From Oculina patagonica (lineage: Eukaryota): a DNA stretch of 64,000 bases. The stretch covers positions 23,312,001 through 23,376,000 of the forward strand of contig NC_135769.1 of NCBI RefSeq assembly GCF_052425735.1. The letters run 5' to 3'. The notes beneath the pieces were generated by a model that saw only the letters and a program-made list of their open reading frames with translations, was not told where the DNA came from and did no database searches. Below are positions 25,201-28,200 of the stretch, one piece after another. Position 1 is the first letter of the stretch, and the number at the start of each line of letters is the position of its first letter. Position numbers and translations under genes: made by a program.

Positions 25201-28200
25201 TTGTTGTGACAGTTGATGGAGTTGTTATTGGAAAACGTCTGGCGGAAGTCAGAAATCACTCACTCCTGCAGCCGCACTTTATGGACCTACCCAACATTAA
25301 CCCAGCTCTGATAACAGATGCAACAAGATCATCTAACGTTAACCAAAGTGAGCATGGTAGTGGCTCGGCTTTCAACAGTTTTGTTAACTCAATGGTTGAT
25401 CCATCAATTTCTTTTGAAACTGTTGACTGGCTGAAAAGCATCACCAAACTGCCAATTATTCTAAAGGGAATTTTGGCAGCTGATGATGCAAGGGAGGCCA
25501 TTGAACACGGAGTTGATGGAGTCATTGTTTCCAATACTGGAGGAAGACAGTTGGACTACACTCCTGCCACAGTAAGTATGCTAAGTATTTTTTTTTTTTC
25601 ACTGTTTGTCTGTCTTTTTGGAGAAACTTACCAGGACACTGGCAGGCTCTTTAGCAGGTATGCCATAATGTCGGTGAAGCCTCAATTGGGCGATTCCAGA
25701 AAATATCCGTACCATACCACGGACGGCTTCCATATTTTAGCCCCCCTTGCCTTCGGAAATTCCAAAATGCGTTATCCCCCCATGCCCTCGGAATTCCATA
25801 ATCATTATCCCCCCCTCCCGTTCAGATTTTTCATTTTTTCGTCAAGCTCTTTAGAATTCCCGTCAGGGTTCGCAAATACGCCCAATGTGGCGTATTTTAC
25901 ATCAAATTATTTCAAATGACTCGATCTGTACATGGAGACAGTCATTATGACTCAAGAGATTCTAGGATGAAAATGTAAAAAAAAATAAGACTTTTCTCCT
26001 TACCCTTGTTCACCAGATACAACCTACATTAACTTTACATTGCCCCAAACTGGTGCAGAACATTAAAATAAGAATATCGTGTGATGCACGTGTGTAAACT
26101 CGGAAGATAATACGATCGAGTGCATTGACATATCCGCCATCTTGAATTTGAGCCTTCAGGGTCAGCAGTCGCTCCCAACCCACGTGCTTCAAAATGGCAT
26201 CTCGAAGCGTAGCAAAAAAGTTTCCCACTCCACTGAATGGACTAAATATTTGTGGATCCGCTTTGACAAGAAAACAAAGAGCGAATGAAGAAGTTCAGGC
26301 TAGAACCCACATTTTAGCGATTTTCTTTTGTAAATGAACGCAAACACATGCCTGATCGATCGATACTTGTCTTGTATCCTGCTTCTGCGACGCGGTCGTC
26401 AGTTCGTGCTTTATTTGCGAATTGGTAGTCCACAAAATAAGCACTTTCAAGGAACACACTCTTGTTTTCTCCTCTGGAAATCCAAGATCTGGAACTTCCT
26501 CATGCCTTTGGAATTCCAATCGTAAGTATCCCCCCATGCCTTCGGAATTCCAGTTCAAAGAACCCCCCCTTGCCCTCGGATTTCCAAAAAGCCGTCCGTG
26601 GTATGGTACGGATATTTTCTGGAATTGCCCATTTTCCAAACTCAGGAATGGGGAAAAGTGTCAAATAAGGTGCCCTACCTGACTGTTGGCCAACAGTCGG
26701 CCGAAAAATGCCAAACAGTCTTTTTTATAATGTCACTTATCCAGCTTTGATCTCAGGTAACATTTCACTATTATAGCTGTCTGTCAGCAAGCTGTCGGTG
26801 ACCTGTTGGTAGACTGTCGGTGATACCGTAACACCCACTCTCAAATAAATGCCTCGTATCCAGTAAACGCCTCCCCTGAAGTGTAAGTTTGTATTAGACA
26901 CCCCCCTCTTATAAACACCCCATGTCTAATAGACGCCCCCTCCAAGAATCACCTCAAAAACCAGGAAAATGCTCCATGTAAAATCACGCAATAATTAAGT
27001 TAGTTTCTTGCTTGACTCAGGCATTGAAGAGGCCAACAACACCAACATGGTTGACCCCGATGACGATGAAAACAAACTATGAACGACATCTCTAGGCTTT
27101 GCATTAGCACAGATTAGATTAGTCTCCTACTCACAAACTCTCTTTTGTTTCTTACTCCTCTAGCAAACGACGCATCCTATTTACAGTTTTAAAATTAATA
27201 AACGCCTCTCTCTTATAAACACCCCATATCTATTTAACGCCTCCCCTAGGACCCCTAAAATTTAGACGCCCCGGGCATTTATTAGATCATGGTATGTCAG
27301 CCCACTGTTAGCTAACAACTTACCGGCAGACTTATAATAATGGGAACTCTTCTTTGTTCACAAAGCCAGAATGGTGGGCTATAGCTATACAATACCCTTT
27401 AAAATTTTAATTTTAGCGCTATATCAATTAGATTATTATTATTATTATTATTATTAAAAGTTAATGCTGTTACATCTATAGCATAGTAGCCCTCCAAATA
27501 ATGGTCTGCTAGCAACTATCAATGAGGCAATAATCCCTCAACATAACACTTTTTTATATAAGCATAATCTTATCATTGGGATTATATTAGTCTCCCTCGC
27601 AGCCATTTTTAGTGTCGTCACGCAAGGCTGTGGGAGGAGCTTGCGCGATGACACTAAAAACGGTTGCAAGGGAGACTAGGATTATATGCACTTATCAAGA
27701 AATTTATTTACCAAGTTAATATAATCGGTTTTTTTTGGTAGATTGATGTTCTACCAGAGGTTGTGGAGGCAGTTGCAGGAAAGGCTGAAGTGTATATTGA
27801 TGGCGGAATAAGAACAGGGACAGATGTGTTGAAAGCTTTGGCTCTGGGGGCACGAGCTGTTTTTATTGGTCGACCAGCCATCTGGGGACTTGCAACCAAG
27901 GTGCTTGTCACAGTTTATACTATAATAATAAAAATAAATAATAATAAATGGGAATTTGCAGTAGCACTTCCACAGAGTGGCTCTTCGTCCACTGTTCCCG
28001 ATTGAATTGAAATTTAGCAGTGTTGGTTTTTGTGGAGGGAGGAAAACCGGAGAACCCAGAGGAAAACCCTCGGAGCAAGGACATAAACCAACAACAAACT
28101 CTGTGAACCCACATATGACGCCGGGTCCGGGAATAGAACCCGGACCACATTGGTGGGAGGCAAGCGCTCTCACCACTGCACCATCCCTGCTCCCACTATT

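Follow-up and report, generated by a model that had tools for sequence, protein, structure and literature searches.

A coral gene of the hydroxyacid oxidase family in which the catalytic histidine is replaced by threonine

Can a protein of the flavin mononucleotide (FMN)-dependent hydroxyacid oxidase family be maintained once the histidine that serves as its active-site base has been lost, and what would it still do? This question is raised by a gene of the stony coral Oculina patagonica located within a stretch of 64,000 nucleotides (NC_135769.1, positions 23,312,001 to 23,376,000), hereafter the window; coordinates given without a chromosome are those of the window. Mechanistic studies of the family, among them the hydride-versus-carbanion debate, have revolved around the His base for decades. 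In an earlier note, made from the letters of the window, it was proposed that within 25522-25557 the catalytic His (His260 of human HAO1) is replaced by Thr in an otherwise intact gene, and that the product is a maintained His-less protein (a pseudo-enzyme or one with altered chemistry), neither an error nor a dying gene. Both proposals stand. The gene is almost certainly real and under selection, given the independent support for the codon, the Thr-bearing orthologues, the low ratio of nonsynonymous to synonymous substitutions (dN/dS, omega) and the splicing of the gene.

The replaced histidine in a canonical scaffold

The codons at 25530-25556 (TCC AAT ACT GGA GGA AGA CAG TTG GAC) are translated as SNTGGRQLD. 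The Thr codon, ACT, is two base changes away from CAT or CAC, in keeping with the claim of at least two. When exon 3 is compared with PDB sequences (phmmer), it aligns to residues 103-271 of human HAO1 (6gmb_A, E = 3e-44). Thr267 of the Oculina protein is found opposite H260, Val opposite W110 and an altered segment opposite T158-VDTPYLGN-R167. The replacement of the specificity Trp (SSW) by Val and of TVDTP by TVDGV, both read earlier from the sequence, are thus borne out.

The gene includes six exons (22216-29877, + strand), delimited by tblastn with coral homologues and by inspection of the borders, which are all GT-AG. The coding sequence of 1125 nucleotides is uninterrupted and encodes a product of 374 amino acids ending in SRL, followed by TAG; the six in-frame exons and the C-terminal peroxisomal targeting signal of type 1 (PTS1) that had been announced are therefore present. 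The product and P0148 (KAL9956798.1/XP_078346958.1, "hypothetical protein ACROYT_G038336 [Oculina patagonica]") have exactly the same sequence. Since XP_078346958.1 is an NCBI annotation, the six-exon model is independently confirmed.

The contigs or reads of four runs were compared with the window over 24000-29900: X1 (DNA), X19 and X18 (guessed to be RNA; two studies with two organism labels) and X24 (small polyA run). Four spliced joints with GT..AG borders are found, all matching the predicted borders exactly; they are the four joints covered, from exons 2-3 to exons 5-6. The joints 24154>25025 (exons 2-3, cut +2), 25571>27742 (exons 3-4) and 28796>29813 (exons 5-6, cut +3) are seen in contigs of both X19 and X18, and 27898>28728 (exons 4-5, cut +2) in X19 only. 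None of the four is seen in the DNA run X1. X19 and X18 are taken as RNA because it is difficult to account in any other way for spliced joints that the DNA run lacks, and the gene is thus expressed and spliced in two studies. One X19 contig joins 25179-25571 to 27742-27901. Its exon 3 departs from the window in ten places; the list of these is complete, and the codon at 25536-25538 is not among them. A contig of X1 also covers the ACT codon, and no change is found there among the differences listed (14 of 15). The codon is thus read as ACT in an independent DNA run, as far as these listed differences go, and in a spliced contig.

Membership of the FMN_dh superfamily is established by homology: the product matches Pfam PF01070 (FMN_dh) with 440.4 bits for a cut-off of 24.9, over profile positions 1-348 of 350, and FMN_dh is also matched exon by exon in the genome search. 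A structure model (AlphaFold2, alignment of 60 sequences) shows a confidently predicted HAO1-like (beta/alpha)8 barrel, with a predicted local distance difference test (pLDDT) score of 93.2 and a predicted template modelling (pTM) score of 0.93; loop 4 alone is soft. The best Foldseek match of the model is human HAO1 with FMN and glycolate (6GMB; template modelling scores 0.92/0.95, 49% identity), and the top matches are all HAO1, GOX, LCHAO or mandelate oxidase. The C-terminal SRL fits the PTS1 pattern (S/A/C)-(K/R/H)-(L/M). On the model, the Oculina protein is a predicted peroxisome-targeted, FMN-type (beta/alpha)8 barrel of the hydroxyacid oxidase family.

The equivalents of Y26, Y132, D160, R167, K236 and R263 of HAO1 are all retained in the alignments, as had been claimed. 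The FMN residues (Q130, T158, K236, S258-N259, D291-G-G, G314-R315) are present and invariant across the clade of Thr-bearing relatives described below (Thr clade). The carboxylate/hydroxyl contacts (Y26, Y132, R167, R263) are present, and none of the FMN and substrate contacts listed for HAO1 varies in any sequence of this clade; Asp160, the former partner of the His, does not vary either. Human HAO1 (PDB 6GMB, 2RDU) has the same residues, the same DGG and GRP motifs and, like the Oculina protein, a C-terminal PTS1-type signal. It differs from the Oculina protein by His260 (Thr), by the glycolate-oxidase-specific Trp110 (Val), by TVDTPYLGNR (altered), by T80-A81 (S80-G81 in Oculina) and by a loop 4 that is 7 residues shorter.

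Could the protein nevertheless be an ordinary (S)-2-hydroxy-acid oxidase that tolerates Thr, with enough activity left, or rescued by Asp160 or solvent, for its physiological role? This is improbable, even if all but the base is canonical and the gene is the sole member of its subfamily in the Oculina genome, with no His-bearing copy, so that the ancestral job might have been kept. When 1.84 billion cluster representatives were searched exhaustively with HMMER, 3098 of them matched at E <= 1e-30. Among the best 149 of the other family representatives, the column holds His in 146, Cys in one (P0287) and Gln in one (P0262); the last one is misaligned. His is also found in 111 of the 120 matches listed in the search with exon 3, and the nine without His are exactly the Thr group. 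A residue present in 146/149 family representatives and in 111/111 listed matches outside the clade is arguably needed for the normal reaction. In flavocytochrome b2, a His-to-Gln variant is moreover said to have lost orders of magnitude of activity. PMC10153336 names this His as the active-site base of the family, which agrees with the earlier statement that His260 is a near-invariant catalytic base, and gives Trp110 as peculiar to glycolate oxidases. The position of Thr267, that of the active-site base (PMC10153336), is also the one changed in flavocytochrome b2 H373Q; that laboratory variant is engineered and nearly dead, whereas the Oculina protein is natural, carries Thr instead of Gln and is selected across species.

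The His260-Asp160 pair of (S)-2-hydroxy-acid oxidases (EC 1.1.3.15) is thus broken in the Oculina protein, with Thr at the His position and Asp160 retained. Trp110 of glycolate oxidases (HAO1/GOX) is Val in the Oculina gene and in the whole Thr clade, and Val or Met in the related His-bearing clade. Since both His260 and Trp110 are lacking, classification of the protein as a working (S)-2-hydroxy-acid or glycolate oxidase is not warranted.

Other base replacements are rare. P0287 (552 amino acids, long C-terminal tail) reads SNCGGRQLD, and P0262 (364 amino acids) reads SNQGARHLD, with Arg263 changed too. Both are 50%-cluster representatives, each a single sequence, full-length, eukaryote- or animal-looking and of the HAO family. 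Like the Oculina gene they have the base replaced; unlike it they carry Cys or Gln, belong to unrelated lineages and show about 46-49% identity. No description of a coral HAO or of a natural His-less member of the family was found in the literature searches.

A clade of Thr-bearing coral genes under purifying selection

The search with the open reading frame (ORF) of exon 3 returns a tight coral group, after which identity falls to about 49% for ordinary HAOs. SNTGGRQLD is found in the window, P0001-P0008 and P0012 (10 sequences), i.e. in 9/9 database relatives with 72-96% identity over exon 3. These sequences carry TVDG[VIG]VIGKR, or TVD-AVIGKR in P0012. A second group (P0009-P0021 apart from P0012, 60-71% identity) carries SNHGGRQLD and mostly TVDATVRGKR. 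Val is found at the Trp110 position in both groups, with Met in a few members of the second; the Trp110-to-Val change, common to both clades, is on this alignment older than the loss of the His.

In the maximum-likelihood (ML) tree of the exon 3 region, the coral subfamily is grouped together (100/98) and the Thr clade of 10 rows is monophyletic (99/98), which argues for a single replacement event. Judging from the tree and the codons, His260 was replaced by Thr once, through two nucleotide changes from CAT to ACT, in the ancestor of the clade that includes Oculina and Orbicella. The codon is ACT in the window and in four orthologous loci (L022, L023, L025, L028), ACA in L021 and L027, and CAT in the His clade; the use of both ACT and ACA indicates that synonymous change has been tolerated. 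The nearest relatives checked as orthologues thus all encode Thr. In the Thr clade, the species named are Oculina patagonica and Orbicella faveolata, and P0003, from a Tara Pacific metagenome, may belong to Pocillopora; in the His clade they are Montipora foliosa, M. capricornis and Porites lobata. Oculina and Orbicella are robust corals, and Montipora and Porites complex corals. The Thr/His split may therefore follow the robust/complex divide, on the few named species sampled, and the replacement is apparently located in robust corals.

The sister clade (Montipora foliosa XP_068710142.1, M. capricornis, Porites lobata P0010) is 64-70% identical to the Oculina gene. Common to the two are six exons of identical phases, Val110, a longer loop 4 and an end of PTS1 type (ARL/SRL). 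The Montipora members are annotated "2-hydroxyacid oxidase 1-like", and the sister clade differs by keeping His260 (CAT), Thr80-Ala81, Arg or Lys at 164 and Tyr323. Fixed in the Thr clade and absent from the His clade are Y22, A29, S80, G81, L92, I164, T267 (= H260), E287, A293, I297, L308, T330 and L366. Two of these changes, T80S and A81G, were co-fixed beside the flavin, just before the conserved M/H-x-x-AHP stretch. The Ala of Thr80-Ala81 contacts flavin N5 through its backbone.

The orthologue set includes seven places for the Thr clade (six distinct orthologues) and three loci for the His clade. All orthologue exons that are present are intact, with the same phases and GT-AG borders, including those of the six other Thr-clade loci; for L021 and L022, collinearity with the window extends to both flanks of the gene. 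Pairwise dN/dS (NG86) is 0.16-0.37 in the Thr clade (dS up to 0.54) and 0.23-0.25 in the His clade. The ML omega of six Thr-clade genes is 0.24 (IQ-TREE, GY+F3X4 codon model, exons 3-6); fixing omega at 1 gives a likelihood-ratio statistic (2dlnL) of 141.6 (p about 1e-32). dN/dS is thus well below 1, far from neutrality, and the clade has been under ordinary purifying selection long after the loss of the base. Omega on the stem is about 0.2, without an obvious burst, according to a rough subtraction of pairwise distances.

An artefact or a decaying pseudogene, i.e. a codon error or an unexpressed, neutrally drifting copy, is extremely improbable. Its sole foothold is that the protein database holds no full-length transcript-derived protein of the Thr clade. 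Against it stand the same codon in an independent DNA run (listed differences), in a spliced contig and in the orthologues of other species, the frames and splice sites that are intact everywhere, and the omega test. Sequencing error and pseudogene were accordingly ruled out on the independent contigs, the ACT/ACA orthologues and omega.

The Orbicella faveolata protein P0153 (XP_020627942.1) derives from a model that has a stray exon 4 copy at its start and runs on into an intron at its end. The site is VSYTGGRQLD in this protein, with Asn259 changed to Tyr beside the Thr; the clustered ORF P0007 reads SNTGGRQLD. The gene may be present more than once in Orbicella; alternatively, the P0153 model may be chimeric.

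Only four FMN_dh loci are found in the Oculina genome. The other three, on C13, C2 and C3, are about 45% identical to the Thr gene and all carry the His. At the His-clade loci L029 and L030, the gene is flanked on one side by a conserved upstream gene and on the other by a convergent Abhydrolase_3 gene. In Oculina the same two neighbours are 2.8 kb apart on C13 (Abhydrolase_3 at C13:35379125-35380021, - strand), and the Thr gene is on another chromosome. No HAO remnant was found by tblastn at this syntenic position (G000:C13:35359000-35388999; L032-L034), and the Abhydrolase_3 neighbour of the His-type gene is absent from the window. The Thr gene would be either a relocated orthologue or an old paralogue with reciprocal loss. 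The paralogues of C2 (G000:C2:24088000-24095600) and C3 (G000:C3:29248500-29255300) form a pair of their own in the tree, and in both Tyr takes the place of Trp110. Arg167 is apparently replaced in one of the two (TIDVPVLEFGRH), and a TGA was flagged by the genome search inside one of the C2 exon matches.

Catalyst or binder

FMN and an alpha-carboxylate (2-hydroxy- or 2-oxo-acid-like) ligand would still be bound by the Oculina protein, given the residues it keeps, and the canonical His-driven dehydrogenation would not be run efficiently. A re-tooled catalyst with altered or very slow chemistry is tentatively favoured over a non-catalytic binder. The kept Asp160 could act through the Thr hydroxyl or a water molecule as a proton relay, giving a slow or different reaction; alternatively, the protein could act on substrates that need no base. 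Class 2 dihydroorotate dehydrogenases use a Ser-based relay, of which a Thr/water relay is reminiscent; this is a lead only. The fuller proposal, that a robust-coral HAO has turned to different chemistry with the imidazole gone, Gly near flavin N5, and Asp160 working through a Thr-hydroxyl/water relay or base-free substrates being used, is conceivable and rather unlikely.

A non-catalytic pseudo-enzyme is a serious possibility, if a doubtful one. It would be a peroxisomal binder or sensor of a 2-hydroxy acid, a 2-oxo acid or flavin, or a regulatory subunit acting with the His-bearing paralogues, for which the three other FMN_dh genes are possible partners. Removal of the His is a classic way to kill the reaction of the family, its role as base being given in PMC10153336, and purifying selection on invariant binding residues suits a binder as well as a catalyst. 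The strength of selection is, however, like that of the catalytic sister clade (omega 0.24 vs 0.23-0.25), and Asp160, Lys236 and Tyr132, whose known roles are mainly catalytic, are all invariant. As for a subunit, identity to the paralogues is no more than about 45%, and mixed oligomers are accordingly less likely.

Several observations weigh against the favoured re-tooled catalyst, or against the support on which it is built. No new His, Glu, Asp or Lys that could serve as a base was fixed on the stem of the Thr clade, according to the comparison of clade-fixed positions; a stem branch without a replacement base also suits a pseudo-enzyme. A ligand-binding pseudo-enzyme would be just as much expected to keep the ligand- and FMN-binding residues. 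Gly at position 81 is found in 38/149 family representatives and, being this common, is in itself no sign of new chemistry. The small polyA run X24 has almost no reads on the exons of the gene, and the RNA nature of the splice-showing runs is only a guess of the tool, though the joints absent from DNA argue for it. The C-terminus is SRL in L021, L023 and L025, and STL, which is not a canonical PTS1, in the two deeper members L022 (13423-13484) and L027 (3171-3232); peroxisomal targeting may therefore differ within the Thr clade.

Gene map, surroundings and significance

Table 1. Exons and residues of the Oculina patagonica gene. Coordinates are those of the window.
Feature	Coordinates	Strand	Basis or remark
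Exon 1, ATG to split codon 46	22216..22352	+	tblastn with coral homologues, splice context, alignment to HAO1 residues 5-44
Y22, specific to the Thr clade	22279-22281	+	In exon 1
Y26	22291-22293	+	In exon 1; kept with respect to HAO1
Exon 2	24005..24156	+	tblastn, splice context; exon 2-3 joint in X19 and X18 contigs
S80	24105-24107	+	In exon 2; S80-G81 is Thr-Ala in most relatives
G81	24108-24110	+	In exon 2
Exon 3, large exon	25027..25571	+	Covered by contigs of X1 (DNA) and of X19/X18
V110, Q130, Y132, T158, D160, R167, lengthened loop 4, K243 (= K236), S265-N266-T267, R270 (= R263)			In exon 3
Thr267 codon ACT	25536-25538	+	Replaces the catalytic base His260 of human HAO1; residue coordinates, HAO1 alignment
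Exon 4, FMN phosphate-binding DGGIR...GRP motifs	27742..27900	+	Joint 25571>27742 in X19 and X18
T330	27895-27897	+	In exon 4; Tyr/Phe in relatives
Exon 5	28730..28799	+	Exon 4-5 joint in X19
Exon 6	29816..29877	+	Exon 5-6 joint in X19 and X18
PTS1-type SRL	29866-29874	+	In exon 6
Stop codon TAG	29875-29877	+	In exon 6

The introns of the gene include extremely repeated sequences, at 25576-27348 (intron 3) and 27940-28333 (intron 4). In the DNA run, the summed contig depth reaches about 160,000 on intron 4 vs about 25 on the exons. The polyA reads pile up at the intron repeats, mostly on the minus strand. A tRNA scan of the intron 4 repeat revealed no tRNA-like gene, and a 160-amino-acid ORF of the minus strand (27751-28233) has no Pfam match. 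The intron repeat is probably a high-copy interspersed repeat.

Upstream of the gene and on the opposite strand, an exon-sized ORF (14983-15477, - strand) matches the SOUL heme-binding domain (E = 3e-39). Two long ORFs at 969-5414 (+ strand) encode a reverse transcriptase and RNase H (969-3551) and, at 3735-5414, an integrase core together with an integrase zinc-binding domain. Split into two frames, they represent the pol region of a long terminal repeat (LTR)-type retroelement.

The present annotations ("hydroxyacid oxidase 1-like" in Orbicella, "hypothetical protein" in Oculina) are misleading. In metabolic reconstructions of the coral peroxisome, which deal with glycolate, glyoxylate and oxalate in an animal that calcifies and lives in photosymbiosis, this gene should be left out of the glycolate oxidases. 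The Thr proteins of Oculina and Orbicella and the His proteins of Montipora and Porites form a natural matched pair for the study of base-free active-site chemistry. If the Thr/His split does follow the robust/complex divide, it would amount to a discrete biochemical distinction between the two major lineages of corals; if the chemistry is indeed different, a lineage-specific peroxisomal reaction would set robust corals apart from complex ones.

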